DNA of 64,000 bases, from positions 186,001 through 250,000 of the IMG/VR virus record IMGVR_UViG_3300049215_000771. One strand, 5' to 3'. Shown here piece by piece: positions 14,120-61,429 of this stretch. How positions within the stretch are numbered: the stretch's first letter is position 1; each line of letters opens with the position of its first letter. The position numbers and the translations under genes are program-made. The notes under the pieces are model-generated. The model did not search any database. It was not told the DNA's origin and worked only from the letters and a program-made list of their open reading frames with translations.

Positions 14120-14293
14120 ATGTACGAAATAAGGAAAGAAAGCGCCGTCCTCTCCCAAGGACAAACTCCCGAAGAAGCCATCAGCAAACTCACTGGCCGG
14201 CACGAGAAAACTGAATTGTGGTTCCGGGGCCAATTCGTCGCTGAACTCGAACATACGGAAGAAAAAATCCACACGCATTGGGTGGGAGACTGA
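14120..14293 (+). CDS. small hypothetical protein (57 aa)
   Basis: fills gap; stop overlaps next ATG. Confidence 0.5.
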   Translation: MYEIRKESAVLSQGQTPEEAISKLTGRHEKTELWFRGQFVAELEHTEEKIHTHWVGD

Positions 14294-14847
14294 TGGCAAT
14301 ACTCAAAGGCTTCCCTCCAAGCAGTAGCATCAGTCCTGGCCCACGCATCAGGACTGCTACCCGTTGGGAACAAACACAAGAAATCATCGACATGGCCGAA
14401 CCACTGACAATGCTCGACATGATGGGAAAAGTTCTCAACAATCCCACCATGTACCTCGCCGAAGCCAATATCTTCAAGTTTGAAGATTTCTGGCATGGGT
14501 GGACGCTGGGCAGGGTCCGGCCCGATGAGAATAAGTTCATGCTGGCGTTTTACGACTGGACAATAGAGAAAGTGAAAAGCAAATGCCCCCGTGAGAACGG
14601 CTGGGCCTTCATGTTTCACCAACTCGCCAAGGAGAAACAACGAGAAGAATCTGATTCCCTCAAAAACAAACCGCTCAGGAAGTCAGACGACATCTTGTTC
14701 TGCTCCAAGAGATCGGAAGAACTTGCCCTCGATTACCTTGCCACCTACTGGTTTCGCTTCATCCAAGAAACCCCAGCGGAGAATTTCCCCTATGACACCG
14801 AAAAAGCCAAACACGTCAAACCCTGGCGAACCATCGACGACCTATGA
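14293..14847 (+). CDS. hypothetical protein with C-terminal WRTIDDL motif
   Basis: TGATG coupling; C-terminal motif shared with five other ORFs. Confidence 0.7.
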   Translation: MAILKGFPPSSSISPGPRIRTATRWEQTQEIIDMAEPLTMLDMMGKVLNNPTMYLAEANIFKFEDFWHGWTLGRVRPDENKFMLAFYDWTIEKVKSKCPRENGWAFMFHQLAKEKQREESDSLKNKPLRKSDDILFCSKRSEELALDYLATYWFRFIQETPAENFPYDTEKAKHVKPWRTIDDL

Positions 14848-15058
14848 AGTGACCTTGCAACATAGCGTCAACGGCAAGGTCAAAGCTACCAAAGCCTGTG
14901 ATGTCACAGCCGACAGCGAAGATGAAGCTATCCAGTGCGCCCTCGAAGTCGCTGGAAGCTGCCAGGGCGGAATGTTCAACACATTCCTGGAAGGCAAACA
15001 TGAACTCACCGTCGTCTCCTGTACCATTGTGCCCCAACCACAACGCCCCATTCCATGA
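14792..15058 (+). CDS. hypothetical protein
   Basis: ORF; start uncertain. Confidence 0.5.
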   Translation: MTPKKPNTSNPGEPSTTYEVTLQHSVNGKVKATKACDVTADSEDEAIQCALEVAGSCQGGMFNTFLEGKHELTVVSCTIVPQPQRPIP

Positions 15059-15092
15059 CTGGCTTACATGCTACGATTGCTACATACTCTAC

Positions 15093-15458
15093 ATGAAAGC
15101 TACAAGGAACAAACGCAAGCGAGACAAACGACGGAAGTATCGTAACATCCGTATCCAAAGCCCCGCTAACAAGTGGACCCAACTTGAAGCCATCTTGGAT
15201 CATTGCAAAGAAGCCCTCGCCTATGCCTCCAAGAACAACGACTGGAATAACCTCGACTGGCCCCCAGGTTGGTCCTACGAGAAGTGGCGCTTCCTCCGAG
15301 ACTACGCCAGGGAGAAACTGGAAAACCATCACCAAGGTCGCATGAACCGTATCATGGGCGGTCCAAAACAAACCGAAGCCTTCAATGAGTGGCTGTTCGA
15401 TATGTGCGACATACTCCACCATGCTCGCCAAGAAGGAATCTTGCCCGACGAAAGGTGA
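15093..15458 (+). CDS. hypothetical protein
   Basis: CTACATA-N6-ATG upstream. Confidence 0.6.
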   Translation: MKATRNKRKRDKRRKYRNIRIQSPANKWTQLEAILDHCKEALAYASKNNDWNNLDWPPGWSYEKWRFLRDYAREKLENHHQGRMNRIMGGPKQTEAFNEWLFDMCDILHHARQEGILPDER

Positions 15459-15460
15459 AT

Positions 15461-15766
15461 ATGCTGGCCGTTCAAACCCAAAGCAAAATAGACGGACTTT
15501 GGCAAAACGTGAAGCGATTCCGTAAAAAAACCACCAAAACCGAAGTTGATCGTCAGTTTTTGTGGTGGAAGTGGAAAGGCGTTATCACAACACCCGAAGA
15601 TACGACTGCGTTCAGAAAACGAGTGGCGGAATTTGCCTCGTCAATCAACAACACTGGCGAAAACATCAGAATTCAAGAATACCTTCCAGCCTATGACGAA
15701 TATGGAATGAAATGGTATCCGAGCGACTGGTCTGAAACTGTGTGGCTTAATGGCGAATGGCTATGA
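15461..15766 (+). CDS. hypothetical protein
   Basis: AGGTG SD. Confidence 0.6.
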   Translation: MLAVQTQSKIDGLWQNVKRFRKKTTKTEVDRQFLWWKWKGVITTPEDTTAFRKRVAEFASSINNTGENIRIQEYLPAYDEYGMKWYPSDWSETVWLNGEWL

Positions 15767-15954
15767 ACGATCTCGACAAAGATTGGTCGCCCAATGACGA
15801 TTACTTCTATGAGATTCAAGATGCCAAGTTATGGACAACACCCATCAATGAAGAAGGATACCAAAAAATAATCGACCTTATCTTGGAACTGCCCAACCTG
15901 AAACCCAAGAAGAAACGCTGGCGATCTATCGACGACCCCATCGAACCGAGCTAA
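15757..15954 (+). CDS. hypothetical protein with C-terminal WRSIDDP motif
   Basis: ends KKKRWRSIDDPIEPS. Confidence 0.65.
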   Translation: MAMNDLDKDWSPNDDYFYEIQDAKLWTTPINEEGYQKIIDLILELPNLKPKKKRWRSIDDPIEPS

Positions 15955-15956
15955 TC

Positions 15957-16310
15957 ATGGAAAAAGAACTCAGCTTCCAAGTCCTCGACCTGGAAGACAT
16001 CAACGTGTGCTACTCCGAAGGCGTCCTGAAGGTCATCACCCTTCTCGACAAGCCTACCCACACCCTCAATGGCTACATCGAACTCCTCGCTCGTAAAGCC
16101 ATGCGTGACTACCCGCTCAAATTCGATCCCTCCGAGAACCCCTTCATCAATGCCGTCGCCAACGATAATGTCTTCAAAGCCCAAGTTGGCTACGTCAGTT
16201 TTATCTTCACCGCAGCTAACTACAACGGCAAGAACACCATCTTCGTGTTCCTTTGGGAAGAACTGGAGGAACAAGAAATCCAAGATGGCCAAACAAGGAG
16301 GAAAACATGA
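15957..16310 (+). CDS. hypothetical protein
   Basis: ORF in coupled run. Confidence 0.65.
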   Translation: MEKELSFQVLDLEDINVCYSEGVLKVITLLDKPTHTLNGYIELLARKAMRDYPLKFDPSENPFINAVANDNVFKAQVGYVSFIFTAANYNGKNTIFVFLWEELEEQEIQDGQTRRKT

Positions 16311-16807
16311 AGAAATGGATTATTTGCGTATTACTGCTACTGCCGGGTTGCCATCCCGATAAACCAGCCTACACCCCCGTCAATTGGGACGCTCCCACTA
16401 TCCCGCCTCAGTCCAAACCCTTCCCGCCAGCACCCCCGCCCGAACAACCCCAAACCGTCAATAGCCAACTCCTCGACCTGCATAATCACGAACGCACCAC
16501 CAAAGGTCGCCCAGCCCTGCAAATGGATGACCAACTCAACAAGTATGCCCAGGACCATGCCAACTGGATGGCCCAACATTCCAACTTGCAACACTCTAAT
16601 ATCTCCAATGTCCTCAAACTCGGCTACATGACCGCAGGGGAAAATATCGCCTGGAATCAGCAAACCCCACAAGAAGTCGTTAATGCCTGGATGCACAGTT
16701 CCGGCCACCGAGCTAATATCCTCAATAATCGCTTCACCAAAGTAGGTTTCGGTATGGCCTATAACCAACACGGAGAACCCTATTGGTGTACGGTTTTCGG
16801 TGGATGA
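16307..16807 (+). CDS. CAP (SCP-like) domain lipoprotein
   Basis: lipobox LPGC; HN.ER...G...L..D..L...AQ.HA..MA; GENIA; WM.S.GHRANIL. Confidence 0.9.
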   Translation: MKKWIICVLLLLPGCHPDKPAYTPVNWDAPTIPPQSKPFPPAPPPEQPQTVNSQLLDLHNHERTTKGRPALQMDDQLNKYAQDHANWMAQHSNLQHSNISNVLKLGYMTAGENIAWNQQTPQEVVNAWMHSSGHRANILNNRFTKVGFGMAYNQHGEPYWCTVFGG

Positions 16808-16823
16808 GAAGCTACATAAAGTC

Positions 16824-17555
16824 ATGAAGACTTTCTACGAATGGCTGCACGAAGCGAAATCAGCTAACATAGGACAAACTCCCGCCCAGCCTGCGCCCCA
16901 AGCAAAACCACCAGTAGCAAAACCATCAGTAGCAAAACCACAACCAATTAACCACGGTTATAACAAACCACAAGCCCCAGCCCCACAACCACAGCAACAA
17001 GCCCCAGCCCCAGCCCCAGCCCCACAAGCCCCAGCCCCAGCCCCAGCCCCACAACCACAGCAACAGCCCGCACAGCAGCCACAACAAGGGTCTGCGGGAA
17101 CCGCACCAGATGGCGAGCCGCTGGTGAAAACTCCCGATGGGAAAATCATCAGAAGTTCTGCTGTGTCCAATGCTATCTTCCAGCAATTTGATGAGTTGCT
17201 GAAAAAGAACGCTGATGGTTTCATCAAGAACAAAATAACCGATCCAATGCAACACCAGGGCTTCCAGAAACAAGTACAACAACTCATCAGCAAATGGAAC
17301 CTGCCGCCAGACCAGGCCAAACAAGTCCAAGATCAAATCTTCGGACCCCAAGGCTGGTACTACAAAGGACGTGGCGGACTCGGCGGAAATACCCTCGCCT
17401 TCATCCAACAATCCATCCAAGACCCTACAGCCTTCACAGGCGATAAAGGTGCAGCACAACGACAACAGCAGCAACAACAGCAAGTCCCCGTTGCCCAGGT
17501 AGCCCCACCCCAGCCTCAGAAAAAGTCCTGGATGAGTAGCTGGTTCGGCGGCTAA
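16824..17555 (+). CDS. Pro/Gln-rich putative internal head protein
   Basis: CTACATA-N5-ATG; N-terminus MKTFYEWLHE. Confidence 0.7.
   Translation: MKTFYEWLHEAKSANIGQTPAQPAPQAKPPVAKPSVAKPQPINHGYNKPQAPAPQPQQQAPAPAPAPQAPAPAPAPQPQQQPAQQPQQGSAGTAPDGEPLVKTPDGKIIRSSAVSNAIFQQFDELLKKNADGFIKNKITDPMQHQGFQKQVQQLISKWNLPPDQAKQVQDQIFGPQGWYYKGRGGLGGNTLAFIQQSIQDPTAFTGDKGAAQRQQQQQQQVPVAQVAPPQPQKKSWMSSWFGG
16973..17085 (+). repeat. coding tandem repeats (CCCCAG)n encoding AP/QP linker
   Basis: GCCCCAGCCCCA runs. Confidence 0.8.
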
Positions 17556-17561
17556 TCTGAC

Positions 17562-17590
17562 TTTACAATCCTCCAGAAACGGGGTAAAAT
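17562..17590 (+). promoter_or_regulatory. sigma70-type promoter
   Basis: TTTACA-N17-TAAAAT. Confidence 0.7.
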
Positions 17591-17611
17591 CCACCCCAAG
17601 GAGGATTGTTT

Positions 17612-18208
17612 ATGCTCCAGCAACTTCATGATGCGCTCGTCCGGCTTCCGGCCATGCTCGATGACCGTGCCCGCTGGGATAGCCTCATCATCAACCGCCG
17701 TAAGCCATTCACTTACCGGGTGTTCACCCAACTCGAAGAAGGCTTCCGGCTGTGCCTGCACAAATTCGACCCCTGCTTCACCCAGGAGGCGTTTTTCCAC
17801 CCCCACCCCTGGCCCGGTGCTTTCGTGCTGCTCCAGGGCGCTTACAAAATGAAAGTGGGATATTCCAAAGACGACACCGGCCAGCGACAGCATCGGCTCG
17901 CTAAACCCGATGAAGTCATGGAAATGGTCCTGAATCGCCACTCCATGTACGAGATCATCAACCCACTTACCTGGCATAGCGTCATTCCCCTGGAAACCAG
18001 CTACACAGTCATGCTCAACGGCTGGCCCTTCCCGCCCGAACACGCCCATGCCGAAGTCCGTACAACCAAAGGCAAAGACCTGGACAAAATGCCCGAAGAA
18101 GAACTCCTCGACCACCTGAGAACCTTCAAGAAACTCGTCCATGACTACATCACCACCTACGGCGCAACCCGCCAGTGGGCGCATCATGGGCATACCCTGG
18201 AGGAATAA
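17612..18208 (+). CDS. cupin-fold protein
   Basis: HPHPW...LL.G.Y and WHSV metal-binding motifs. Confidence 0.6.
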   Translation: MLQQLHDALVRLPAMLDDRARWDSLIINRRKPFTYRVFTQLEEGFRLCLHKFDPCFTQEAFFHPHPWPGAFVLLQGAYKMKVGYSKDDTGQRQHRLAKPDEVMEMVLNRHSMYEIINPLTWHSVIPLETSYTVMLNGWPFPPEHAHAEVRTTKGKDLDKMPEEELLDHLRTFKKLVHDYITTYGATRQWAHHGHTLEE

Positions 18209-18443: not shown

Positions 18444-18528
18444 CACGCAAAGAGAAAATCCTGTTCTGGACCGTGTTCACACTGCTTACAATTAAAGCAG
18501 CATTCTACATTTACTTCAGGATTCTCTA

Positions 18529-27573: not shown

Positions 27574-28665
27574 ATGTCGGTTCAACATTTCAAGGTGTTC
27601 TTCGGGCCGGACGATCCGTGGGGAGCGGTAGCGCCCACGGCGGACGAGCGCCGGGAGTTGGTGGAGAGTGGGTTTGCCGGTTTCATCGGCAACGAGCGGG
27701 CGATCAAGAAGCTGAAGGCGTCGGCGTTCGATGCCCTGGGCAAGCCCGACCATCTTTGCCGTGACCTGGCGTTCAGCATTTTCGGCCCGGCGTCGAGTGG
27801 CAAGACGACGCTGGCCCGGCTGTACGCCAAAACCGTCGATCTGCCCTTCGTGGAGGTTTCCCCGAAGGCGGTGAAGACGATGGACGACCTGTTCCGGGAG
27901 ATCGACCGGGTGTTGACGGTCGAGGGCGTGCCGGTGGTGGAAGTGGTCCGGCGCAACTACCATGTTCTGCCGCCCTGTGTGATCTTCATTGACGAGGTTC
28001 ACGCACTGGCGAAGGCAGTCGAGCAGGGCTTGCTGAAGGCGACGGAGTACAACGACGCCACGCTGGTCACGGAGTCCGGCAAAACGATCAACTGCCACAA
28101 TGTTTGCTGGATCATTGCCACGACGGACGAGGGGCGGCTGTTCGACGCATTCCGCACCCGGTTTTCGCCGGTCAACCTTCGCTATCTGAGCAAGGCGGAC
28201 ATTGCCAAGATCGTTCGCCTGGCTCACCCGGACTTCGACGAGGCGACGGCGGCGCTGGTTGCTCACTACAACAGCCGCATTCCCCGCAAGGCGTTGGAGT
28301 TCGCCCGTTACATGAAGTTGGTTCGGCAGATGGGCGCTGACCGCACCTGGGCGGACGTGGCGCAGGAAGTTGCCACGGATGAAGGGATCGACCAGTACGG
28401 CATGAGCGAGGTTCACCTTCGCATTCTGAAGGCGCTGGGCCAGGGTCCGGTGGCGGCAAACCGGATCGTGAATGTCGCAGGAGCGAAGAAGGAGGAAGTC
28501 GAGCGGTTCATCATGCCGTGGTTGCTGACGGTCACGGAAGACACGCCGGCGCTGGTCACGGTGACGAGCAGGGGATACACCATCACCGAGGCGGGCCTGG
28601 CCGAGTTGGACAAGCGAGGGATCGCCCATCGAGGGACGTTCGCCACGCCGAACTATCGCCCGTAG
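27574..28665 (+). CDS. ruvB: RuvB-like AAA+ branch-migration ATPase
   Basis: FIG.E; Walker A GPASSGKTT; Walker B FIDEVH; ATT.....DAFRTRF; C-terminal winged helix G.D..G......L....GP......RG..T. Confidence 0.8.
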   Translation: MSVQHFKVFFGPDDPWGAVAPTADERRELVESGFAGFIGNERAIKKLKASAFDALGKPDHLCRDLAFSIFGPASSGKTTLARLYAKTVDLPFVEVSPKAVKTMDDLFREIDRVLTVEGVPVVEVVRRNYHVLPPCVIFIDEVHALAKAVEQGLLKATEYNDATLVTESGKTINCHNVCWIIATTDEGRLFDAFRTRFSPVNLRYLSKADIAKIVRLAHPDFDEATAALVAHYNSRIPRKALEFARYMKLVRQMGADRTWADVAQEVATDEGIDQYGMSEVHLRILKALGQGPVAANRIVNVAGAKKEEVERFIMPWLLTVTEDTPALVTVTSRGYTITEAGLAELDKRGIAHRGTFATPNYRP

Positions 28666-48721: not shown

Positions 48722-49129
48722 ATGAGATGTTTTGCGTTTGCCCTTGCGCTTCTCGTGGCTTTATGTCATGGATGCGCCAACGAAACCCCAACGCCCGTCA
48801 TGGCTCCAGAAGCCGTTGAATCTTTGGATGAGGTTAATGCGGTGCGTGCCAAGCGAGGGCTTCCTCCCTTCATCAAAGATGAAGGTTTGACGGAAGGCGC
48901 TTTGAAAATTGCTCCCTACCGAGCCGAGCGTTTGATCGCCGGCCACACCAGCAATGACTTCGCTTTCTTGCCCAAGGGCGTTGAAGCGTCAGCAGCAGGG
49001 TGTGCCGCCTGGACACCGGATTGGGGTTGGGGTGCTTGTTGTACCTATGATCGCTACAAGTACGCTGGTGCGGCCTGGGCGATGGGCCGGGATGGAAGGC
49101 GCTACATGCACCTATTTGTCAGGCGTTGA
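48722..49129 (+). CDS. planctomycete-type CAP-like lipoprotein
   Basis: lipobox CHGC; L.EVN..RA.RGL.PF..D..L...A. Confidence 0.65.
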   Translation: MRCFAFALALLVALCHGCANETPTPVMAPEAVESLDEVNAVRAKRGLPPFIKDEGLTEGALKIAPYRAERLIAGHTSNDFAFLPKGVEASAAGCAAWTPDWGWGACCTYDRYKYAGAAWAMGRDGRRYMHLFVRR

Positions 49130-49648
49130 TTCGTTGAGATAATGGTCAACCCTTGTCTCGGCGATGGGAAGATACTCGATGTCTTCCCTCCAGTCGTAAT
49201 CGCAGCCCTCGTATTTGAGGGGAATCTCCTCCGAGGGCTGCCCTTCCATATACACTGCCTCGTGCATGAAAGCCATCTCCCGGTCAATCCCCACGGTTTG
49301 CCAATTGTACAAATCCAATGCCGACACCTGGTCCCCCGGCTTGTATCTCACTCCCCTTGTCGCCCGGAGGAAGTCGTGCATTCCAGCTTTTTCTTCTGCT
49401 TCATTCATCCACATGGCACCATGCTCCGTGTCCGGCCAGCCCGTGTCCGATGAGTCATCTCGACGTTCGTACTCCTCATACAACTCACGGTAGTAAATTG
49501 TGCTGTAGGGGCGTCCGGCACTATCACGAAAATTGGTTTTGTTCGGCCCACAATAGTTGTAGGCGTTACGCTTGTCCTTGTCCCGTAGCTTCCACAACGC
49601 AGCTTGTTCCGGCTGCTGGAGCCATTCCTGGTAATCGTTCCAATTCAT
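49112..49648 (-). CDS. hypothetical protein (F(M/A)H paralogue family)
   Basis: EMAFMHEAVY ... RVDHYL. Confidence 0.65.
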   Translation of the reverse strand: MNWNDYQEWLQQPEQAALWKLRDKDKRNAYNYCGPNKTNFRDSAGRPYSTIYYRELYEEYERRDDSSDTGWPDTEHGAMWMNEAEEKAGMHDFLRATRGVRYKPGDQVSALDLYNWQTVGIDREMAFMHEAVYMEGQPSEEIPLKYEGCDYDWREDIEYLPIAETRVDHYLNESTPDK

Positions 49649-49976
49649 CTTGCTTTGCCTCCAAAGTTTTAACTCTGGCTTGCAGGTCTTTCACAATCTC
49701 CCATACCCTTTCAAGTTCGGGCACCACTTCCTTCTTCATCTGATCCCAAACATCCACATTCTCGATCTTCTCATTATCCGAGTAGATAACATCGTGCATG
49801 AACATCATCTCAGGCGGCAGTTCGCACACTTCTGAGTTGTAGGGAAATGGCTGCCCGACAATCGGAATGCGTTCGATGAAACGCCTGACCCGTTCTTCCG
49901 GCGAAACTTCATAGAAGAATTCCTCGCCAACGTCCTCATCTTCGCTCTCAACCCTTAGTTTTTCTGTTGTGTCCAT
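49566..49976 (-). CDS. hypothetical protein (F(M/A)H paralogue family)
   Basis: CELPPEMMFMHDVIY. Confidence 0.6.
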   Translation of the reverse strand: MDTTEKLRVESEDEDVGEEFFYEVSPEERVRRFIERIPIVGQPFPYNSEVCELPPEMMFMHDVIYSDNEKIENVDVWDQMKKEVVPELERVWEIVKDLQARVKTLEAKQDELERLPGMAPAAGTSCVVEATGQGQA

Positions 49977-49981
49977 GAAAA

Positions 49982-51232
49982 TCACCAACCCCGCCCGCCT
50001 CTCGATACTAAGTTAGAAACGTAGACCGAAACTTTCGATAGGTCAACACTAGGCTCGAACTTGATCGACGTACCGTAATGATTGCCCCCAGGAACCATGT
50101 AAGTAAGCGATACATAAGTTTTTGTTTTCTTCACGTCAATCTTCGCCCCACTTTGCGCCGCCAACTTGCCCACCCCAGGTGCCTCCGATGTACCAAAATC
50201 TTTCCCAATGGCACCACTCCAGCCGGGTTCCCCAATGTTCCTAACTAACATCCGATAGGCTGGCAAAGTTTCAGCCCCACCCGTAACCAACAATTCCAAC
50301 AATTTTGCGAAACGACGTGGGCCGGCATTTCTACGGGCAGCTTTCTCGAACATAGAGAGGACGAGTTCAGGTCTTTCCGAATCTTCGTAGAGAGGGTTAG
50401 TGAGAATGTCCTTGAGTGCCTTGATGTTTTTACCTCCCAACAGGGCGTAGGATTTGCCGAGGCCGAAGCTGCGCACTTCGATCTGTGTCTCGGTGACGGC
50501 CTTGAGAGAGAAGCCCAGGGAGGAGCGGTCGGCCCCTGCTGCGGAGGAGCAAATGAGGCGCAGGTCGGCGGTGTCGGATTTGAGTTTACCGGCTCCAGCG
50601 CCCCAGCCTGCCCCACCCAGGAACTCGATGGAGTCGATGATGCAGGCCCGAATCAAGGCCGAAGATTTCTGGAAGATCAACTCGCCCATACCTCCACTGC
50701 CACCGCCCGCATGAATCCTGATGAATTCACAAACCAACTTGCCGAGATTGGGGTCTTTCAACTTGGTGGCAATCTCCCCTTCCAGGCGAGTTTTTTCCGC
50801 CGTGGCCGAGGCCAGATTCATGGTGCCGACAGGACTCAATTTGTGGGTGTTCAGAAGATACAAAAACACTTCAATCTCGAACAGGAGGCCCATCTCCTTG
50901 CCCACGACGGAAGGCAGAGATTTCTTGCCTGCATCCATCGCCTTCTCAAACGACGCCTTCTCCGCAGGCTTCCAGTGTCCGATCTGGCCAGCAATGGCTC
51001 CCGTCGCTGCCGGTCCCTTCCAACCCTTCTGTGTGATTTCTACCAAATCTCCGGGATGGACGACGCTGGCCGCAAGACGCATGGGAGTAGGCGCTGCCAT
51101 CTCGTCGGCGATCTTGGGGAAGGTAATACTCACATACCCCTCTCCTGTCGAGAAACGTACCCCTTGTTTGAGCCGGGTCACAAATGGCATTAGCTCCGCA
51201 TCAACACCAACAAATTCTTTGAATTGAAACAT
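49982..51232 (-). CDS. putative virion protein
   Basis: CTAAATA-N5-ATG; MFQFKEFV. Confidence 0.65.
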   Translation of the reverse strand: MFQFKEFVGVDAELMPFVTRLKQGVRFSTGEGYVSITFPKIADEMAAPTPMRLAASVVHPGDLVEITQKGWKGPAATGAIAGQIGHWKPAEKASFEKAMDAGKKSLPSVVGKEMGLLFEIEVFLYLLNTHKLSPVGTMNLASATAEKTRLEGEIATKLKDPNLGKLVCEFIRIHAGGGSGGMGELIFQKSSALIRACIIDSIEFLGGAGWGAGAGKLKSDTADLRLICSSAAGADRSSLGFSLKAVTETQIEVRSFGLGKSYALLGGKNIKALKDILTNPLYEDSERPELVLSMFEKAARRNAGPRRFAKLLELLVTGGAETLPAYRMLVRNIGEPGWSGAIGKDFGTSEAPGVGKLAAQSGAKIDVKKTKTYVSLTYMVPGGNHYGTSIKFEPSVDLSKVSVYVSNLVSRGGRGW

Positions 51233-51240: not shown

Positions 51241-51690
51241 TTAGCACAAGCACGAAATCTTCTTGGAGTTCTTCAGGTAATCATCCACCCGGTTATCCAT
51301 GTTGCCACGGGCCACAATGTTCCGGTCGGCCTCAACCTCGTCCCACCAGTTCTCCCGATACTCCGGGAACGATAAATCAACATCTTCTACGGGTTCATCC
51401 TCCGGGAAGATCGCCTCGTGCGCAAACATCAAGTCGGGAGGCAACTCGCAATACTTTGGATCGTATGCCAACGACTTGCGGATCGGTTCTTCATTTTTTA
51501 CGTCCGGCCCCACAATCCCAAAGTAAGAAGGACAATCTTTCCATAACTTCTTCTGCTCAGGTTCGTTCAACCAGCGAGCAAACTCCTCGTCACTCATTAC
51601 TTCAAGCCAGTGACGAAACTCCGCTATGTTCTCAGGATTCAATGACTGCGTGACACACATATTGAACATGCCAGGAACACAAAATGCCAT
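51241..51690 (-). CDS. hypothetical protein (F(M/A)H paralogue family)
   Basis: CELPPDLMFAHEAIF ... RVDDYL. Confidence 0.65.
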   Translation of the reverse strand: MAFCVPGMFNMCVTQSLNPENIAEFRHWLEVMSDEEFARWLNEPEQKKLWKDCPSYFGIVGPDVKNEEPIRKSLAYDPKYCELPPDLMFAHEAIFPEDEPVEDVDLSFPEYRENWWDEVEADRNIVARGNMDNRVDDYLKNSKKISCLC

Positions 51691-51711: not shown

Positions 51712-52167
51712 ATGAACTTCAAACATTGGCTACACACCGAAGAAGCCCAACCTATCCAGCCCGCACAAGTTCAACAAATTCTTTCTGCGCATCGTGGACC
51801 CCTCAATACAGGGAATATCAGAACCGACCTCCTGGTAAGTGCCGCCAACCGAGGCGAACACATTATGTTCGATCAAGACTTCCCAATCACAAACATCGGA
51901 CGGCGCATCCAAGGGTATGATATGAATCATGTCATGACAATGATAAACACCATCTTCAAAACCATCGGCCTGCCCGCCATCCAAGATCGTACCCAAATCC
52001 AACCCCAAACAATCCAACCTCATATCGAACAAATCAAAGAAGCCCTGCCGCCCCTCATCGTGTCCCTCATGCCCGATGAATCGTACCACCTGGATGATGG
52101 CAACCATCGCCTGGGTGTCGCTAGAACTCTTGGCCTCCAAACCGTCAAAGCCTTCATCATTCAATAA
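51712..52167 (+). CDS. ParB/sulfiredoxin-like domain protein, putative virion protein
   Basis: PP.IV......Y...DGNHR..A...G...V.A; CTACATA-N5-ATG; MNFKHWLHTEE. Confidence 0.7.
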   Translation: MNFKHWLHTEEAQPIQPAQVQQILSAHRGPLNTGNIRTDLLVSAANRGEHIMFDQDFPITNIGRRIQGYDMNHVMTMINTIFKTIGLPAIQDRTQIQPQTIQPHIEQIKEALPPLIVSLMPDESYHLDDGNHRLGVARTLGLQTVKAFIIQ

Positions 52168-52621
52168 GATCAATCAACCACGGATCGTCAATACTACGGT
52201 ATTTATGCTGTTTGGAAAGATTTTTACCAGGTTCCAGTACAGCTTCGATTTGAACGAGTTTGTAGGAGGAGCCGACCTGGAGGATGCCCTGGTCGTCCAC
52301 TCGTCCGTTGCCGACGCCGACCATTTTGAAGCCAACGCCGTTGGGGTTATAGTTGAGGACGGACTGAAGGGTTTGGCCTGCGGGGGTGGAGAGGATTTTA
52401 ACTTCGGCCATGAGTTTATCGTCATCCATCCACAATTTTTCGATGGAGTGGGAGACATTGGTGAAGTGGATGATGGAATCCGTAACGGGGCCGAGTTCGC
52501 ACAACATGCCCCGGCCATCAATGATAGGTTTGAGCCGATCCACCTGTGCCTGGAGAAGTTCCTTGCTATAAACACGATTGGTCGGCGTTACCTTATCAGC
52601 GACACAAACAGTAACGATCAT
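52157..52621 (-). CDS. T4 gp21-like prohead protease paralogue, probably inactive
   Basis: N.RVY....L ... EL ... VSH.I..L ... KIL.TP.G; catalytic SSRG replaced by KMVG; ends YRSIDDPW. Confidence 0.7.
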   Translation of the reverse strand: MIVTVCVADKVTPTNRVYSKELLQAQVDRLKPIIDGRGMLCELGPVTDSIIHFTNVSHSIEKLWMDDDKLMAEVKILSTPAGQTLQSVLNYNPNGVGFKMVGVGNGRVDDQGILQVGSSYKLVQIEAVLEPGKNLSKQHKYRSIDDPWLIDLIE

Positions 52622-52630
52622 ACGCACTCC

Positions 52631-53038
52631 TTATGTACTGTCACGCAGATAGCGTTTTACTTTCTCCGTGGCGGGCAATCTATCATCGTACTGGCGAAGG
52701 TAATCGTTGTCATCCAGGACCGGGATGTAATACTCATCATTTTTGCCCCAACGTGCCCCTTCTTCCTTGGCAGAAAATGTCGTGTCCCACGAGGAATTGT
52801 CCCCGGAATCGAACACGGCATTGTGCATGAACAAGGTTTCGGCGGCGAAGGGCAACTCACCTGTTTGCAGGGACTTCAGCAGCGCCTCCTTCACTTCCAG
52901 ACAGTACGCATCCGTGTCGAACATCCGTTGGTCCTCCCGAATCCAGGTTTTGGGTCGGCCCGGCTTGTTGTCCATCTGGTATGGAGGTTTGCTGTAGTCC
53001 GACTCCTTCACTTCCTGGATGTATTTCTCTTCCGCCAT
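52631..53038 (-). CDS. hypothetical protein (F(M/A)H paralogue family)
   Basis: ELPFAAETLFMHNAVF ... KVKRYL. Confidence 0.6.
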   Translation of the reverse strand: MAEEKYIQEVKESDYSKPPYQMDNKPGRPKTWIREDQRMFDTDAYCLEVKEALLKSLQTGELPFAAETLFMHNAVFDSGDNSSWDTTFSAKEEGARWGKNDEYYIPVLDDNDYLRQYDDRLPATEKVKRYLRDST

Positions 53039-53689: not shown

Positions 53690-54337
53690 ATGAAAAAATA
53701 TCTTGCCTCCATCTTGTTTGTCGCCGCTCTCCTGGCCCTTATCATCGGTCGTGCCTTCATCGACACCACCCACCCCGACGCCTACGAAAATCAAGGCTTT
53801 GAATTCATCGCCCAACCCGACAACATCACCTGCGGCCCCACCAGCACCACCATGCTGCTCAAATACTACGGCAAAGATGTTACCATCGCCCAGGTCGAGA
53901 AAGAAACCCGCACCAAATGGTTTCACTGGAAAGGAGAAGACATCGGTATGACCGCCCCGGAATATGTAGAAATCGCCCTCCGTCGCTTTGGCGTCCCCGC
54001 CAAAATGCAACGAGGTAGTTTCAACAACCTCAAACATTATGTTTCCCAGGGCCGTCCCGTCATCGTCAACGTCCGCTCCGGGCAAACTACCTGGCATTAC
54101 GTCGTTGTCATCGGCTACACTAACGATCAAGTTATCTTGGCTGATCCCGGCGATGGCGCTCGGATCACCATCTCCGCTGAGAATTTCCTTGGTTGTTGGT
54201 CGTTCCAGACAGATATGGATGGAACTGTTTGCGGGCATTCTGATCCGCTGTGGGGGCGAGTCGATCCACTCAAAGATTTGCTGTGGGCTGGTGAAGTGTA
54301 CCCCTACACCATGATCGTACCGGAAAGGAAGAAATGA
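53690..54337 (+). CDS. C39-like cysteine peptidase, membrane anchored
   Basis: Q.....CGPTS..MLL.YYG; HYVVV.GY; L.DP. Confidence 0.8.
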   Translation: MKKYLASILFVAALLALIIGRAFIDTTHPDAYENQGFEFIAQPDNITCGPTSTTMLLKYYGKDVTIAQVEKETRTKWFHWKGEDIGMTAPEYVEIALRRFGVPAKMQRGSFNNLKHYVSQGRPVIVNVRSGQTTWHYVVVIGYTNDQVILADPGDGARITISAENFLGCWSFQTDMDGTVCGHSDPLWGRVDPLKDLLWAGEVYPYTMIVPERKK

Positions 54338-57090: not shown

Positions 57091-57122
57091 GGTAATGTTC
57101 CTGTCGGTATGTACCCTCCTGA

Positions 57123-57488: not shown

Positions 57489-57490
57489 TT

Positions 57491-57715: not shown

Positions 57716-58094
57716 CTTTTCGATCCTTGACGGTTTGCGGCCTTGAGTCGAACGGGCTGCCGGCGAACTTCTTGATGTCGCCGCTTTCGTAGCCCGGCCT
57801 GAGAATGCCTTCGATTTCATCGAAGTAGGCGATGAAGTTTCGCCTGATCCCTTCCATGTCCTCGATGAAAACAACAGAAATCTTGCGGTCGGAGGGCGGA
57901 TACATCAACCGGATCATGTACATTTTTTCAACAGAAATGTCCACGCCCCGGTTGATGCGGGCTTGCTCCGCTGTCGCAACCATGCCGTCAAGAACGTCTC
58001 GTGGGATGGCATCCATGATGGAACCAGTCACCCTGTACTCCAGGATACCAATTACCAGTGTCGGACCCATGCTGTCCCAATTGAACCCGTTCAT
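57690..58094 (-). CDS. hypothetical protein
   Basis: ATGA coupling. Confidence 0.65.
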   Translation of the reverse strand: MNGFNWDSMGPTLVIGILEYRVTGSIMDAIPRDVLDGMVATAEQARINRGVDISVEKMYMIRLMYPPSDRKISVVFIEDMEGIRRNFIAYFDEIEGILRPGYESGDIKKFAGSPFDSRPQTVKDRKDVRPDGTR

Positions 58095-58852
58095 TGCTCG
58101 TCATCCCCCACTTCCTCATTTTCCCATTTCTCGATTTCTTCCTCCTCCTTGGGACGAGCCGCCGCCATTTCTTCCTTCGTGGACAGGTGATAGATGCGCC
58201 GGTAGAGTTCGGACTGGACGAAATCGAGGGCGTTCAACTCCTGAAGGTCCAGCTTCCTCTCCCGACTGAGTTTGCAGAACTGTGCCTGGGCAGCTTGCAA
58301 ATCTTCATCCGTGAGTTCGGGCTGGCGTTTGTCCATCGCCGGGCTGCGGCTTTCCAGGGTGGTCGGTTCACAGCGGCCTCGCTTGATGATCGGTTTCGCC
58401 TTGCCCGACTTGTTACCGATCATGACGGTTTCGCCGTTCTCGTCCTCATCCATCGTGTAGTAGGAATCACCATCTTCCCCGAACGGGCAGTAGTCGGAAA
58501 GCAAGATGATTTGTTCCGGGTGGTGTTGGAAATCGAGCGCCGAGTGAGTGGACTGGACATTCTCGCCCTTGTCGTCGCTACACATCTCCTGCACGGAGCC
58601 AATGGCGAAGGCAGGTTCCAGCATGATAGAATCGCTGATGCTGCCGCCTGGACTCAGGATTTGAACCTGTTGGGCCAGTTGTTCGGGCGTCATTTTGTCC
58701 AGGTATGCCTTCAGATCGGCGTAGGTGAAGTCAGGCTTGCGCTCGTATTTCAGGTTGTCCTTATTGCACCGTTTTTGCAGCATCAGGCGTTCCTTCTTCT
58801 GCTTGTGGTGCCGGTCGAACGCTTTGTTGGTTTGTTCCTTGCGTGTTGCCAT
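58091..58852 (-). CDS. hypothetical protein
   Basis: AAGGGA SD. Confidence 0.7.
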   Translation of the reverse strand: MATRKEQTNKAFDRHHKQKKERLMLQKRCNKDNLKYERKPDFTYADLKAYLDKMTPEQLAQQVQILSPGGSISDSIMLEPAFAIGSVQEMCSDDKGENVQSTHSALDFQHHPEQIILLSDYCPFGEDGDSYYTMDEDENGETVMIGNKSGKAKPIIKRGRCEPTTLESRSPAMDKRQPELTDEDLQAAQAQFCKLSRERKLDLQELNALDFVQSELYRRIYHLSTKEEMAAARPKEEEEIEKWENEEVGDDEQ

Positions 58853-58911
58853 ATGTCGATCCCTTTCTCGAACGGGTCCGGGGGCGATTCTTACGCCTAC
58901 GATGGCCTCGT

Positions 58912-59268
58912 TTACCCCTGCTCACCGTAGTCTCCTTCATCGTCAATGGATCGGTATTGGGTTTTGTTTTTTCCTTTCTTCTTGGCGGCTTCAGCCTTCT
59001 TCTTGCGGATTGTCTCCCAGGCTTTCTTGGCAGCAGCAGATCGCTTGGCGTGCAAAGCAGCTTTTTTGGCCTGTTCCTCCAGGGCTTTCTTATCCTGGGC
59101 AGTACCGTTGACCACGGTGGTCGGGATGTAGACAGGCTGTGCGGCCTGGTGCCCTCCGCTGCGTGGCTTGCGAAAGTGCCCTGCCCTAACGTGTTTCGTC
59201 TTCGTGTTGAACAGTTTGTTGTTCATTGCCGCCAATCGCTCAATAAAAAAATCTGCTACCGTAGGCAT
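58912..59268 (-). CDS. Lys/Ala-rich basic protein with C-terminal YRSIDD motif
   Basis: AAKKAWET.R motif; leaderless sigma70 promoter. Confidence 0.65.
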   Translation of the reverse strand: MPTVADFFIERLAAMNNKLFNTKTKHVRAGHFRKPRSGGHQAAQPVYIPTTVVNGTAQDKKALEEQAKKAALHAKRSAAAKKAWETIRKKKAEAAKKKGKNKTQYRSIDDEGDYGEQG

Positions 59269-59274
59269 TCAGGG

Positions 59275-59303
59275 ATGATACCACGAAAAAAGCCGAGTGT
59301 AAA
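59275..59303 (-). promoter_or_regulatory. sigma70-type promoter, leaderless
   Basis: TTTACA-N17-TATCAT on - strand, ATG 6 nt downstream. Confidence 0.7.
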
Positions 59304-59363
59304 CCACTCGGCTTCTTCCGGCCCAAGGCCAGCCCCCTTATGGCCCTGGGACTTCTCTCTGGA

Positions 59364-60536
59364 TCAAAGTATATCGGACACTGGCGGGGTCCGCAAGATC
59401 ACCCTGCCAAAATTCCGGGGACCAACTTTGACCACTTGGCCCGGACATACAGAACCATCTTGGTCTACTTTCTGTCCATCAACACTCACGCCGCCCTGCG
59501 CCAGCAAACGCTTGGCTTCTGTTTTACTGCATTTGCGAATGGCGATAATCGCCTGCATAAGTGTATCCACTTGCACAAAGGGAATATCTTTCGGGACTTC
59601 CTTCTGCACAATGGTCTTGGTGAAATGCTCCCAGGCGGCATTGGCTTCTGCTTGGCCGTATAGCTGCTTTGTAATATCCCAGGCCAGTTGCATTTTTTCT
59701 TCCATCGGACCAAGCACAGCGGCCTCGTTCGGCTCCGAGGACAACAAGGGAATCCACTCCCTCATTACGTCGTCGGAAATACTCATCACCTTGCCGAAAA
59801 CATCCACCGGATCGTCGTCCAGCCAGATGCAGTTGTTGTAAGATTTACTCATCTTCCTGCCATCCGTGCCGTTGATGATCGGCGTCAGCACGGACAACTG
59901 CGGCTTCTGGCCCCATTGTTCCTGAAGGAACCGGGCGATCTGGAAGTTGAAGAGTTGATCTTGACCGCCGATCTCAATTTCTGTTTTCAGGGCGACTGAA
60001 TCCCAGCCCTGGAGAATGGGCACCAGAAGTTCGTGGAGGCCGAGCGGGTTGTTGTTTTGCATCCTGGTCTGGAAAGAAGCACGAGCCAGCATTTGCTGGA
60101 CGGTGAACTTGCTCGCCAGAAGCATCATATCCGGCACTTTCATTTGATTGAAAGATGCCTCCCCGTTGTTGAAGATCGGGATGTCATGTCCCAAAATACG
60201 CCGGACCATGACCGTGATATGGCTGGCGTTATTCAGGACTTCTTCTTCGGTAAGAATAGGCCGTGTGGTATCCCGGCCAGAAGGGTCGCCCATTTGCGCC
60301 GTGAAGGTGCCGATGACAATGGTGACATCGTGGCCATTGTCCTGAAATTTCTTGACGACTCGGAGCGGTACAAGATGTCCCAGGTGCAAGCGGGGGAAGG
60401 TCGGATCAATACCGAACTTGACCCTGGCTTTTGTGGGAATGGTGTTGTGTGTTGGGCAGCCGTAGGGGGCAAACGAAGCATCAATGGGGAACTTCGTACA
60501 ATTGAGCGTCAGTCCGTGTTCTGTCCATTTCTTCAT
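59364..60536 (-). CDS. tyrS: tyrosine--tRNA ligase
   Basis: G.DPT...LHLGH (HIGH), GG.DQ.FN, KMSKS, C-terminal S4 domain. Confidence 0.95.
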   Translation of the reverse strand: MKKWTEHGLTLNCTKFPIDASFAPYGCPTHNTIPTKARVKFGIDPTFPRLHLGHLVPLRVVKKFQDNGHDVTIVIGTFTAQMGDPSGRDTTRPILTEEEVLNNASHITVMVRRILGHDIPIFNNGEASFNQMKVPDMMLLASKFTVQQMLARASFQTRMQNNNPLGLHELLVPILQGWDSVALKTEIEIGGQDQLFNFQIARFLQEQWGQKPQLSVLTPIINGTDGRKMSKSYNNCIWLDDDPVDVFGKVMSISDDVMREWIPLLSSEPNEAAVLGPMEEKMQLAWDITKQLYGQAEANAAWEHFTKTIVQKEVPKDIPFVQVDTLMQAIIAIRKCSKTEAKRLLAQGGVSVDGQKVDQDGSVCPGQVVKVGPRNFGRVILRTPPVSDIL

Positions 60537-60694
60537 CAGTCACCGACCTTTGCGAGAAAATAGCCAATGGCGACCCCGATCAGCAGCACAACGACCGTGC
60601 GAGACAAATGAATGAGGCTCCAGTAGGTGTACGGGTTCAGGGTACTGACCAGAAAAAGCACCACCAGAATGATGAGTATCCATTTGCCTTTCAT
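60536..60694 (-). CDS. small two-TM membrane protein
   Basis: MKGKWILIILVVLFL...VVVLLIGVAIGYFL; coupled on both sides. Confidence 0.55.
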   Translation of the reverse strand: MKGKWILIILVVLFLVSTLNPYTYWSLIHLSRTVVVLLIGVAIGYFLAKVGD

Positions 60695-61074
60695 TTTGGC
60701 TCCCAGGGATCGTCAATGGAACGATGATGCTTCAGGCCCATAGCAACCAGATAATCATCAAGGTTCATCTTCATGTGTTTCAAAATAGCGTCCCGTATTT
60801 GGGGGTGGCTATCCCAGCGGGCGGTCCCACGTCCGTACCCCACACCTGTTTGCCTTTCAACCTCGAAGTAGAACTCAGCAAGTTTCTTCCTGAAGTTGTC
60901 GATTTGGATAGGGTTAGCCCCTACCAGTTCATCAATCATACATTCCACCTGGAACATTATGATGGAGTCCCCGGTGGAATACTGTGTGCCCTGATGGTAG
61001 GCTAGGATGGCCTCCAGGAACAAGGCGAACACTTTGTTCGCTTCCTCATCCAGTTTCTTCTGCTTGCCAGTCAT
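60691..61074 (-). CDS. stand-alone PrkA C-terminal domain-like protein, ends HRSIDDPW
   Basis: A.K.F..FL..I.AY ... DNFR.....F ... WDSH..IR.AI. Confidence 0.55.
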   Translation of the reverse strand: MTGKQKKLDEEANKVFALFLEAILAYHQGTQYSTGDSIIMFQVECMIDELVGANPIQIDNFRKKLAEFYFEVERQTGVGYGRGTARWDSHPQIRDAILKHMKMNLDDYLVAMGLKHHRSIDDPWEPK

Positions 61075-61429
61075 CGTCGATGCTTCTGTATTTGCCTGTG
61101 ATTCCCTCCCATTTCGGGATAGGCTGGCCCTGTTTCAAATATAACTGAATAGCATGAGCCAGCGTGGGATTGCAATCCCAGGTTATCTTCTTCCCATTGT
61201 AGTTGAGATGGCCGAAGAAAGCGAAAACCATCCGGCGAAAGTCATCAGCCCCTTGTTCCGGGATGTCGGCACACTCCTCAACGGCTCGCATGAATTGATG
61301 TTCTTCATCCGAGAGTCTGCGAGTTTTCTCGTACAACGGATAGCCTTGACGGTCGCTCATGCCAACAGTGAGGTAGTGATCTACACACGAGGCATAATAC
61401 CCGAATAGCCTCTCCCGGTCATCCATCAT
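61046..61429 (-). CDS. stand-alone PrkA C-terminal domain-like protein, ends YRSIDDDW
   Basis: FMR.VEE...IPE...DDFRR.V..F.G.L...GK...WD.N..L..AI...L. Confidence 0.65.
   Translation of the reverse strand: MMDDRERLFGYYASCVDHYLTVGMSDRQGYPLYEKTRRLSDEEHQFMRAVEECADIPEQGADDFRRMVFAFFGHLNYNGKKITWDCNPTLAHAIQLYLKQGQPIPKWEGITGKYRSIDDDWQAEETG

Follow-up and report, generated by a model that had tools for sequence, protein, structure and literature searches.

A 673-kb soil phage and its relatives carry the same short peptide, lysines followed by Y-R-S-I-D-D-P-W, at the end of a flexible tail on at least 19 unrelated small protein families, several of which are copies of pieces of the phage's own capsid, portal and head protease. 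The peptide looks like an undescribed address label for one common receptor. No paper or solved structure was found to hold the motif, and a profile search of the PDB returned no hit. The analysis started from a window of 64,000 nucleotides (the whole stretch of DNA examined) belonging to the 673-kb phage contig, which carries a T4-type head module. A preliminary description of this window had reported six ORFs, from five unrelated families, ending in a shared RSIDD-type tag with differing codons. This observation proved to be correct and is stronger than first reported. The features of the window are as follows.

14293..14847 (+): tagged ORF 1, an orphan of 184 aa as called on the source contig; tail KAKHVKP-WRTIDDL-stop, motif at 14824-14844 (with the stop, 14824-14847).
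15757..15954 (+): tagged ORF 2, an orphan of 63-65 aa; tail KPKKKR-WRSIDDPIEPS-stop, motif at 15919-15942 (to the stop, 15919-15954).
52157..52627 (-): tagged ORF 3, a catalytically dead paralogue of the T4 gp21-type (S77) prohead protease; end YRSIDDPWLIDLIE-stop at 52201-52157, tag YRSIDDPW at 52201-52178.
58912..59268 (-): tagged ORF 4, 104-118 aa, rich in lysine and alanine; tail KKKGKNKTQ-YRSIDDEGDYGEQG-stop at 58956-58912, motif at 58956-58939.
60691..61074 (-): tagged ORF 5, 127 aa, a possible distant paralogue of ORF 6; tail GLKH-HRSIDDPWEPK-stop at 60726-60691, motif at 60726-60703.
61046..61429 (-): tagged ORF 6, 126-127 aa, matching part of the PrkA C-terminal domain, its end overlapping the start of ORF 5; tail GITGK-YRSIDDDWQAEETG-stop at 61090-61046, motif at 61090-61067.
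53690..54337 (+): a C39-like cysteine peptidase with an N-terminal hydrophobic segment (precomputed Pfam hits PF13529 and PF03412), 1 kb from tagged ORF 3; given as context only and not shown to be part of the system.

To determine whether the six copies could have arisen by chance, the window was translated in six frames. R[ST]IDD occurs exactly six times, and every copy lies 1-8 residues before a stop in an ORF picked by a codon-usage gene caller, whereas shuffling each of 115 predicted proteins gives 0.013 proteins with the motif. The codons differ between copies: Arg is CGA, CGT or AGA, Ser is TCT, AGT, TCC or AGC, and Ile is ATC or ATT. As both serine codon families are used, selection acts on the protein. 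Public gene calls on the source contig agree with the ORF ends described previously and with most of the starts, but give shorter starts for three of them (15763-15954, 58912-59226 and 61046-61426). The claim of five unrelated families is roughly right: ORFs 5 and 6 are at most distant paralogues (25% identity over 67 aa, E 2e-4 in a single comparison that includes the tag), and the others share nothing once the tails are removed.

We next searched each carrier of the window against protein families. ORFs 1 and 2 had no Pfam or PHROG hit and ORF 4 had no significant one; ESM Atlas searches gave no useful lead for ORF 1 and were uninformative for ORF 5. ORF 3 matched PHROG 207 (1.5e-15) and is 38.7% identical to residues 44-166 of the genome's own active protease. 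It lacks the N-terminal ~45 residues, and the tag replaces the C-terminal tail of the active enzyme. The catalytic residues of the T4 protease are His85 and Ser140; in the alignment the column of T4 His85 holds Pro and the T4 Ser140/Ser141 columns hold Lys/Met, so that ORF 3 has homology to the S77 core but is a dead paralogue and not an enzyme. Its orthologue, protein P0156 (80% identity), keeps both the tag and the dead site. ORF 6 matched PF06798 above the curated cut-off (3.6e-10, 40.4 bits against 25), but only over profile positions 142-206 of 255 and without an AAA+ part. Its only distant homologue, protein P0002 from a 640-kb contig, lacks the tag and ends in a DUF2934 domain instead.

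The search was then extended beyond the window. In 138.5 kb of the same genome we found 18 copies, 16 of them within 12 aa of a stop, whilst scrambled motifs gave 0-1. The tag also occurs in other huge-phage contigs (32 kb to 933 kb) and in genomes ranging from 33% to 61% GC. In whole-collection DNA scans, the in-frame hits on phage-like contigs are nearly all terminal, the one exception following a stop at an A-run. By contrast, hits in unrelated contigs lie 10-376 aa from a stop; most of these are internal and two are short chance ORFs. From 45 distinct tails the consensus is KKKK-[YWHF]-R-S-I-D-D-P-W-E followed by 1-12 variable residues, with an invariant Arg and near-invariant Ile, Asp, Asp and Trp. 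These tails sit on 19 sequence families once the tails are removed. Orthologues keep the tag while the linker diverges, as seen for the tagged proteins T19/T22, T20/T21/T23, T05/T15/T33 and T04/T11/P0154, and for P0156. The tag usually follows a proline- and lysine-rich linker, which is richer in proline (0.11 against 0.06) and in disorder-promoting residues (0.59 against 0.50) than the rest of the proteins. The motif is not strictly C-terminal, however, as four proteins carry it near the N-terminus or internally, 30-143 residues before the stop (at L046:16512-16994 and L015:2644-3009, L denoting the sequences compared, and in proteins P0019 and P0051). This rules out recognition of a free carboxylate of the SSB-Ct kind.

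The main clue could not be seen from the window alone: many carriers are mini-proteins that copy segments of the phage's own head proteins. Pfam Gp23 (PF07068) hits were obtained on tagged mini-ORFs outside the window, but these match only 26-62-residue segments and are not full-length HK97-fold capsid proteins; the full-length gene is at L103:6001-7437. Five different segments of the major capsid protein, including the Gol region, are represented. Identity to the genome's own capsid protein is 88%, 80% and 69% at the amino-acid level over 48, 51 and 26 residues, and as third codon positions are only 23-46% identical, these are old copies under purifying selection. The portal tail repeat WPxLxNPYVP appears in T04, T11 and P0154. 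The T04/T05 gene pair lies a few kb to roughly 10 kb from the capsid gene in two contigs, and the same local gene block recurs in a third. The canonical portal, protease, scaffold and capsid proteins of the genome carry no tag.

The interpretation offered in the preliminary description, an undescribed docking or sorting signal analogous to SSB-Ct or clamp-binding motifs and recruiting diverse phage proteins to one hub, is partly supported. The checks it had named, enrichment at C-termini and conservation in orthologues and related phages, came out in favour of a functional, protein-level terminal motif, and this fits a docking or sorting signal. None of the hubs it suggested (a compartment, a ClpP adaptor, the membrane or a host complex) has direct support, and the copies of capsid, portal and prohead protease point to head assembly, or to mimicry of head proteins, more than to a general hub.

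We therefore favour, with no more than even confidence, a portable short linear docking motif consisting of a lysine-rich patch, then [Y/W/H/F]-R-[S/T]-I-D-D-[P/D/E]-W-[E], then 1-12 variable residues. In this view each carrier is built as module, linker and dock, and the motif, at the end of a flexible, proline-rich tail and occasionally at the N-terminus, would tether many unrelated small proteins of this huge-phage lineage to one common receptor. The receptor would most likely be a component of prohead assembly or maturation, the tag acting like a capsid- or core-targeting peptide that collects these proteins at or inside the assembling head. C-terminal peptides on flexible linkers are how the HK97 protease, the P22 scaffold and encapsulin cargo dock to HK97-fold shells. 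The analysis establishes the motif and the protein-level selection on it, its spread over 19 families and several phages, its conservation in orthologues and the mimicry of head proteins; that the tag (in a form such as KKKYRSIDDPWE) binds a receptor, that this receptor belongs to the head pathway, and any binding to the shell or packaging in the prohead core of these uncultured phages are inferred from sequence alone.

Several results do not sit easily with this view. No receptor was found, and the absence of the tag from the canonical head proteins is not in its favour. Many tagged genes lie in non-structural neighbourhoods, next to DnaB and PolA or next to PTH2 and aminoacyl-tRNA synthetase genes. 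One tagged family and several capsid-like mini-proteins start with a hydrophobic segment that looks like a membrane anchor, which is awkward for packaged cargo. LR756511.1, a 595-kb relative whose capsid protein is 81.5% identical, has no tag in its first 197 kb, and the tag is therefore not needed for this type of head. AlphaFold on a single sequence was uninformative (mean pLDDT 32). A more far-reaching reading, possible but less likely than not, is that these phages would run a modular self-mimicry system in which dozens of mini-proteins each present a peptide copied from the phage's own capsid, portal or maturation protease, on a flexible tether that plugs into a single receptor through the RSIDDPW tag. 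Such a system would either build and load the internal core of an exceptionally large capsid or act as a decoy-and-capture device against host factors that recognise head proteins; neither arrangement has been described for any virus.

Among the alternatives, a processing signal or degron is unlikely but survives best. The motif would be recognised as a cleavage site or degradation tag by a phage or host protease, such as the S77 prohead protease (L103:4378-5064), a C39-like cysteine peptidase or ClpP, which would trim or destroy the carriers at a set time. The core [I/L/V]-x-[D/E] resembles the T4 gp21 site L/I-x-E, present in the T4 gp23 sequence around L-T-E/A, and N-terminal copies in front of a capsid-like domain look like propeptides. 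C39-like peptidase genes lie within 1-1.5 kb of tagged genes in three contigs including that of the window, although this may be plain synteny, and ClpP genes lie about 2.3 kb (L001) and 1.75 kb (L047) from tagged genes. However, P1 would be Asp in 40 of 45 tails and Ala in one, where S77 enzymes take Glu, and P1' is Pro in 32 of 45 tails, which usually blocks serine proteases. Cutting 1-12 residues off a C-terminus has no obvious use, and the motif does not resemble the known terminal degrons (ssrA-type LAA-COOH, MuA-type) and is not at the extreme end; the tails end in unrelated residues.

Anti-defence decoy adaptors are slightly less likely. Here the head-protein copies would be baits for host immune sensors, or other host factors, that recognise conserved capsid, portal or protease epitopes, and the tag, still a docking tag, would deliver whatever they catch to a neutralising hub. 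The copied segments are the most conserved parts of a capsid protein that is over 80% identical across the clade, they are kept under purifying selection, and the commonest bait equals the T4 Gol region, which binds EF-Tu and triggers the Lit abortive-infection protease (PMC3014915). Capsid proteins are immune triggers (PMC9712102), and tagged genes lie among small early-looking genes and translation genes. On the other hand, a Gol-like peptide would be expected to trigger a Lit-type system and not to block it, immune sensors mostly read folded proteins that linear fragments would not mimic, no defence or anti-defence family was matched, and many carriers are not copies of head proteins.

A cis-acting nascent-peptide signal, controlling the next gene through stalling, termination-reinitiation coupling or bypass, is very unlikely. 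The tags lie just before stops, most tagged genes overlap or abut the next start with ATGA-type overlaps, one tagged gene is syntenic with a PTH2 peptidyl-tRNA hydrolase gene in two phages, and Asp-Pro and lysine runs are hard to translate. However, the distance from motif to stop varies from 1 to 12 residues, four proteins carry the motif elsewhere, tight overlaps are the rule for all genes here, and two tagged window genes have no co-directional downstream gene nearby. Lastly, a DNA or RNA element or mobile 3' cassette with incidental peptide conservation is close to refuted: some cassette-like recombination must have moved the tag to so many unrelated genes and lysine runs give A-rich tracts with occasional frame problems in assemblies (L016 and L018), but codons vary freely at synonymous sites, including between TCN and AGY serine codons, the tag spans genomes of widely differing GC content, there are no hits in other frames or on the opposite strand, and nothing is conserved downstream of the stops.

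The tag was compared with the closest described systems. Like encapsulin cargo-loading peptides, it is a short conserved peptide on a flexible linker, usually C-terminal and sometimes N-terminal, shared by unrelated families, in a genome whose capsid protein has the HK97 fold of an encapsulin shell. It differs in having no GSL-type motif, in being encoded by a tailed phage with portal, S77 protease, scaffold and gp23-type capsid genes and not by an encapsulin operon, and in that many carriers are copies of the shell protein itself. The T4 capsid-targeting sequence of internal proteins and the C-terminal docking tails of the HK97 protease and P22 scaffold are also terminal peptides that load diverse proteins into a T4- or HK97-type prohead, and I-D-D loosely resembles the L/I-x-E site that ends the T4 sequence; the T4 signal is, however, an N-terminal peptide of 10-19 residues cleaved after Glu, whereas this tag is mostly C-terminal with Asp-Pro. 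Hub-binding tails (SSB-Ct, DDDIPF-COOH; the FtsZ C-terminal peptide; clamp-binding motifs) have the same layout of folded part, disordered linker, conserved acidic-aromatic peptide and, as in FtsZ, a short variable end, with one motif serving many partners. In those systems one hub protein carries the tail and many partners read it, whilst here many proteins carry the tail; there is no sequence match, and no carrier matched an SSB family above threshold, the only hint being a weak gp32-like hit at E 0.013. The tag does not fit the type VII secretion signal, YxxxD/E after a helix-turn-helix (WXG100, PE or Esp-type) domain in a host with a type VII system: Y at position 0 with D at +4 fits 29 of 45 tails but W, H or F replace Y in the rest, the carriers, where matched, are capsid, portal or protease fragments, and no WXG100 or PE family was matched. 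Finally, the commonest tagged mini-protein family copies exactly the most conserved capsid segment, the Gol peptide of T4 gp23 (T4 residues about 98-134). In T4, Gol is part of the full capsid protein and is exploited by the Lit exclusion system, whereas here it is a stand-alone mini-gene with its own tail, alongside a full-length capsid gene.

A six-frame scan of the window identified R[ST]IDD exactly six times, and every copy lies 1-8 residues before a stop codon. The observation made in the preliminary description, including the positions of the six peptides, was therefore confirmed. A simple codon-usage gene caller picked all six ORFs among 115 genes and public gene calls on the source contig agreed with them. 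Shuffling each predicted protein gave 0.013 proteins with the motif, compared to six observed. Codons vary freely as Arg is encoded by CGA, CGT or AGA, Ser by TCT, AGT, TCC or AGC and Ile by ATC or ATT, and nothing is conserved after the stops. Selection is therefore on the peptide and not on the DNA.

The window corresponds to about 186.7-250.7 kb of a 673,178-bp metagenomic contig (ena:ERZ12294693:scaffold_68_c1) that encodes one of the tagged proteins; a 532-kb version of the same genome is present in IMG/VR. A near-identity DNA search of two window segments against 50,697 phage records returned no match. Nearly all genes of the window are small orphans. The recognisable ones are the following:
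62120-63673, a lysyl-tRNA synthetase
59364-60536, a class Ib synthetase
27574-28665, an AAA ATPase
53690-54337, a C39-like peptidase
a CAP-domain protein

Positions 21001-47200 form a compositional island with a GC content of 0.59 and a mean GC3 of 0.77, compared to 0.52-0.53 and 0.63-0.65 on either side. It holds 45 small orphan genes, 44 of them on the + strand, and the AAA ATPase is its only recognisable domain; no tagged gene lies in it. A second family with a shared tail was found in the window, interleaved with the tagged dead protease (window ORF 52157-52627). It consists of four paralogues, all on the - strand, that share an internal motif (E/D-x-x-F-M/A-H-x-x-V/I-Y/F), three of the four also sharing a C-terminal R/K-V-x-x-Y-L-x-x-S end:
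49112-49648 (-), paralogue
49566-49988 (-), paralogue
51241-51690 (-), paralogue
52631-53038 (-), paralogue

Elsewhere, the genome carries a normal T4-type head module (L103:2374-7437) with portal, S77 protease, scaffold and a 478-aa gp23-type capsid protein, none of which ends in the tag. The capsid protein is over 80% identical across at least 80 IMG/VR loci and is 81.5% identical to that of LR756511.1, a 595-kb uncultured phage genome in GenBank.

To determine how widely the tag is distributed, whole DNA collections were scanned with back-translated patterns. The pattern for K-Y-R-S-I-D-D-P-W hit nine IMG/VR stretches, which fall on the same genome and on three other contigs of 32, 146 and 343 kb. 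The pattern for Y-R-S-I-D-D-P-W hit 23 metagenome stretches and 16 stretches in a collection of one genome per GTDB species. In these scans, the in-frame hits split into two groups. Hits on phage-like contigs lie 1-12 residues before a stop and follow a lysine- or proline-rich stretch, with one exception that follows a stop at an A-run (some related contigs, represented by the stretches L016, L018 and L137, show assembly frame problems at A-runs). In contrast, hits in unrelated, mostly high-GC contigs lie 10-376 residues before a stop; most are internal and two are short chance ORFs, and this second group serves as a built-in chance control. In GTDB, the true hits are all on phage-like contigs binned into Acidobacteriota MAGs, and no host-like protein carrying the tag was found among one genome per species. 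These contigs are a 933,350-bp contig (CAVSYW010000005.1, stretches L137 and L149) deposited inside an 'Acidobacteriaceae' MAG and two contigs of a Chloracidobacterium MAG. They are possibly mis-binned huge phages, which would hint at an Acidobacteriota host, an assignment that rests only on the binning of two phage contigs into Acidobacteriota MAGs, and at a genome larger than the 735-kb record.

In 138.5 kb of the genome that contains the window, 18 copies of the motif were counted, 16 of them within 12 residues of a stop, whereas seven scrambled or neighbouring motifs gave 0-1. As some of that DNA had been selected through the tag, density was estimated from the unbiased part (the window, its 7-kb extension and the head locus), which gives 6 copies per 84 kb, or roughly 50 per genome by extrapolation. 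The strict motif undercounts carriers: degenerate variants (W-R-S-I-D-A-R-stop and H-R-R-I-D-D-D-stop), plus an internal H-R-Y-I-D-E-P-F-E about 30 residues before a cysteine-rich end, were seen at L022:10890-11159, L022:11986-12513 (L022 being an approximately 20-kb stretch of the same genome) and at about 2400-2620 in frame 3 of stretch L015.

Forty-five distinct tails gave the consensus K-K-K-K-[Y29/W9/H4/F2]-R45-S38-I42-D40-D40-P32-W34-E23-P-S (numbers are counts of tails), followed by 1-12 further residues. With the tails cut off, the carriers fall into 19 families at E below 1e-3. Orthologues keep the tag while the linker diverges. This was seen for the membrane-anchored coiled-coil pair T19/T22 from two different genomes (T numbers designate tagged proteins), for the groups T20/T21/T23, T05/T15/T33 and T04/T11/P0154, and for P0156, the 80%-identical orthologue of the dead protease of the window. 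The distribution is nevertheless limited. A distant homologue of the PrkA-like window protein, from a 640-kb contig, has no tag and ends in a DUF2934 domain, and LR756511.1, a complete relative, has no tag in the 197 kb examined. The tag therefore marks a sub-lineage and not all phages with this type of head.

The 20 residues preceding the basic patch are richer in proline (0.11 against 0.06) and in disorder-promoting residues (0.59 against 0.50) than the rest of the proteins. The layout of the carriers is module, linker, basic patch, motif and short variable end. Conserved residues alternate (R, I, D and W at positions 2, 4, 6 and 8), which would suit an extended strand adding to a partner's sheet, although this is an inference. 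The motif is not bound to the C-terminus. L046:16512-16994 begins with a short peptide plus K-Y-R-S-I-D-D-D, followed by a divergent, cysteine-rich copy of the C-terminal half of the capsid protein (33% identity over 129 aa); it lies between a Macro-domain gene and a PARG-like gene, and LR756511.1 has a similar half-capsid paralogue (stretch L136, about 49037-49390). L015:2644-3009 has the tag at residues 24-32, followed by about 90 more residues, and the proteins P0019 and P0051 start with the tag and continue into a capsid N-terminal segment. These cases exclude recognition of a free carboxylate and also argue against a role in translation termination.

Pfam and PHROG scans of tagged proteins mostly gave no hit, but several tagged mini-ORFs carry precomputed or fresh Pfam Gp23 hits. 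These were compared with the genome's own capsid protein.

Tagged mini-ORFs compared with the capsid protein of the genome (mini-ORF; identity; length in aa; capsid residues)
T20 (L022:10613-10900); 88%; 48; 55-102
T06 (L046:10001-10246); 80%; 51; 318-368
T07; 69%; 26; 438-463
T05, T15, T33 and L098:10091-10357; 57-77%; 23-62; within about 400-472

A further piece, on stretch L018, covers residues 252-307. T20 also aligns to T4 gp23 residues 98-134, which is the Gol region that binds EF-Tu and triggers the Lit protease in T4 (PMC3014915). Third codon positions in these pieces are only 23-46% identical to the capsid gene, and identical amino acids use the same codon in only 28-43% of cases; the copies are therefore old and held by purifying selection. 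They lie far from the head module: T20 sits beside PTH2 and synthetase genes, an arrangement also kept in JAANMV010000001.1, and T06 sits beside DnaB and PolA. The L022 stretch that carries T20 is a dense translation-gene cluster with several aminoacyl-tRNA synthetase genes (some unusually short, for example a 205-aa HisRS-like ORF), PTH2 and a 192-aa release-factor-like ORF, and tagged mini-genes are interspersed among them.

Copies of other head proteins were also identified. T04, T11 and P0154 contain the repeat WPxLxNPYVP, which occurs twice in the C-terminal tail of the portal. In the portal of the same genome (L103:2374-4365), the last 100 residues hold two copies of W/Y-P-x-L-x-N-P-Y-V-P-x-S-P-W-D, in which the S-P-W-D part resembles the D-P-W-E of the tag. 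This may be a natural ligand of the same putative receptor or it may be coincidence; the portal of L082, from a 343-kb phage (IMGVR_UViG_3300047160_036266), lacks the SPWD part. The window ORF 52157-52627 is a dead copy of the S77 prohead protease: the T4 His85 column holds Pro, the Ser140/141 columns hold Lys/Met, the N-terminal ~45 residues are missing, and the tag stands where the active enzyme has its conserved C-terminal tail. An AlphaFold model of this protein computed without an alignment had a mean pLDDT of 32 and was unusable, and ESM Atlas look-alikes for two window proteins gave no usable lead.

A sensitive search with T20 found 874 relatives. Most of the top 150 are mini-proteins of 60-130 aa, showing that Gol-like mini-genes are widespread in this clade. 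Their ends fall into three groups: the tag studied here, a second type ending K-V-D-W-K-K-E-G-F-COOH, or neither. The second type, more generally K-[VI]-[DN]-W-x-[KT]-E-G-F at the extreme C-terminus, occurs on capsid N-terminal (Gol-like) mini-proteins of smaller relatives (P0012, P0020, P0025-P0027, P0034, P0036, P0038 and others; L047:10001-10402; L118:12938-13300) and has so far been seen only on that one family. A phage with this second type of end (L047) also has intact protease, scaffold and capsid genes.

Several other explanations were considered. Stop-codon reassignment, or split genes read through stops, was rejected because all three stops end good ORFs and full-length capsid, portal and protease genes exist. 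A capsid gene broken into pieces by introns, inteins or bypass was rejected because the pieces are scattered, coexist with an intact gene and are old. The possibility that the tag is the general C-terminus of the scaffold protein of this clade was also rejected, as only one sub-lineage has a WSSIDAP-like end and 80 head loci do not.

Combined, the data fit a portable docking motif on a flexible tether. Because so many carriers copy capsid, portal and protease segments, the receptor is most plausibly part of prohead assembly or maturation. It also fits that the tag replaces the protease's own tail, and that the T04/T05 gene pair lies near the capsid gene in two contigs and in the same local gene block in a third. 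In this view, the tag would work like the terminal targeting peptides of the HK97 protease, the P22 scaffold, the T4 internal proteins or encapsulin cargo, by analogy only. Several observations argue against the head reading: the canonical head proteins lack the tag, many tagged genes are in replication or translation neighbourhoods, some carriers start with a hydrophobic, membrane-anchor-like segment, and a close relative does without the tag. We consider the combined statement about as likely as not; a docking motif for a common receptor is somewhat more likely than not, whereas its placement in the head pathway has about half that support and remains tentative. The interpretation of the preliminary description, a docking or sorting signal analogous to SSB-Ct or clamp-binding motifs, was supported in part. 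The motif, the selection acting on it as a peptide, its spread over families and phages, its conservation in orthologues and the copying of head proteins were demonstrated from the sequences, all of which come from uncultured phages; the existence and identity of a receptor, the cellular location of the carriers and any processing of the tag are matters of inference.

Most genes of huge phages are orphans. A shared address label sorts several dozen of them per genome into one functional group and gives a direct handle on them, as one synthetic peptide, such as KKKYRSIDDPWEPS, could fish out the receptor. If the receptor is in the prohead, this would be the first portable cargo-loading signal for a T4-type head that works from the C-terminus; it would also give a way in to how capsids for 0.6-0.9 Mb genomes are organised, and a possible tool for loading proteins into phage heads. 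The self-copied capsid, portal and protease peptides are unusual in themselves.

Among the alternatives, a processing signal or degron is unlikely but survives best. The I-D-D core resembles L/I-x-E and peptidase genes recur nearby: C39-like cysteine peptidase genes lie within 1-1.5 kb of tagged genes in three contigs (window 53690-54337; L017:1779-2399, from the same 343-kb phage as L082; L137:11773-12375), the window copy having an N-terminal hydrophobic segment that the others lack. However, Asp at P1, Pro at P1' and the futility of trimming a few terminal residues all speak against it. Decoy adaptors against host factors that read head proteins are slightly less likely still; this possibility is attractive because of the Gol link and the purifying selection, but a Gol mimic should trigger a Lit-type system rather than block it, and linear pieces do not mimic folds. 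A cis-acting nascent-peptide signal is very unlikely, as it is contradicted by the variable spacing to the stop and by the N-terminal copies. A nucleic-acid element is the least likely and is contradicted by the codon variety across genomes from 33% to 61% GC.

Searches of the literature library returned no relevant paper for RSIDD and none at all for SIDDPW, IDDPWE or RSIDDP, and general searches on huge phages and capsid targeting were also empty. A profile of 20 tails searched against all PDB chains gave only chance matches (E above 1), and a tail-restricted protein search did not collect tag-only matches. The tag differs from encapsulin targeting peptides in operon and consensus, from the T4 targeting sequence in position and cleavage residue, from SSB-type tips and terminal degrons in not being at the extreme end, and from the type VII YxxxD/E signal in the folds of its carriers. 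It would work like these systems but belongs to none of them, and the self-mimicry architecture is the part that may be new in kind.

Other features were found in related contigs. In the 343-kb phage (L017 and L082), several neighbouring genes near the tagged gene, including the C39-like peptidase, share a motif F-K/Q-E-W-L/F-x-x-E, at the N-terminus in some and internal in others, which is another possible shared linear motif. In the 933-kb contig, L137:6099-7922 is a thymidylate kinase gene with Hint and LAGLIDADG domains and is therefore probably intein-containing.
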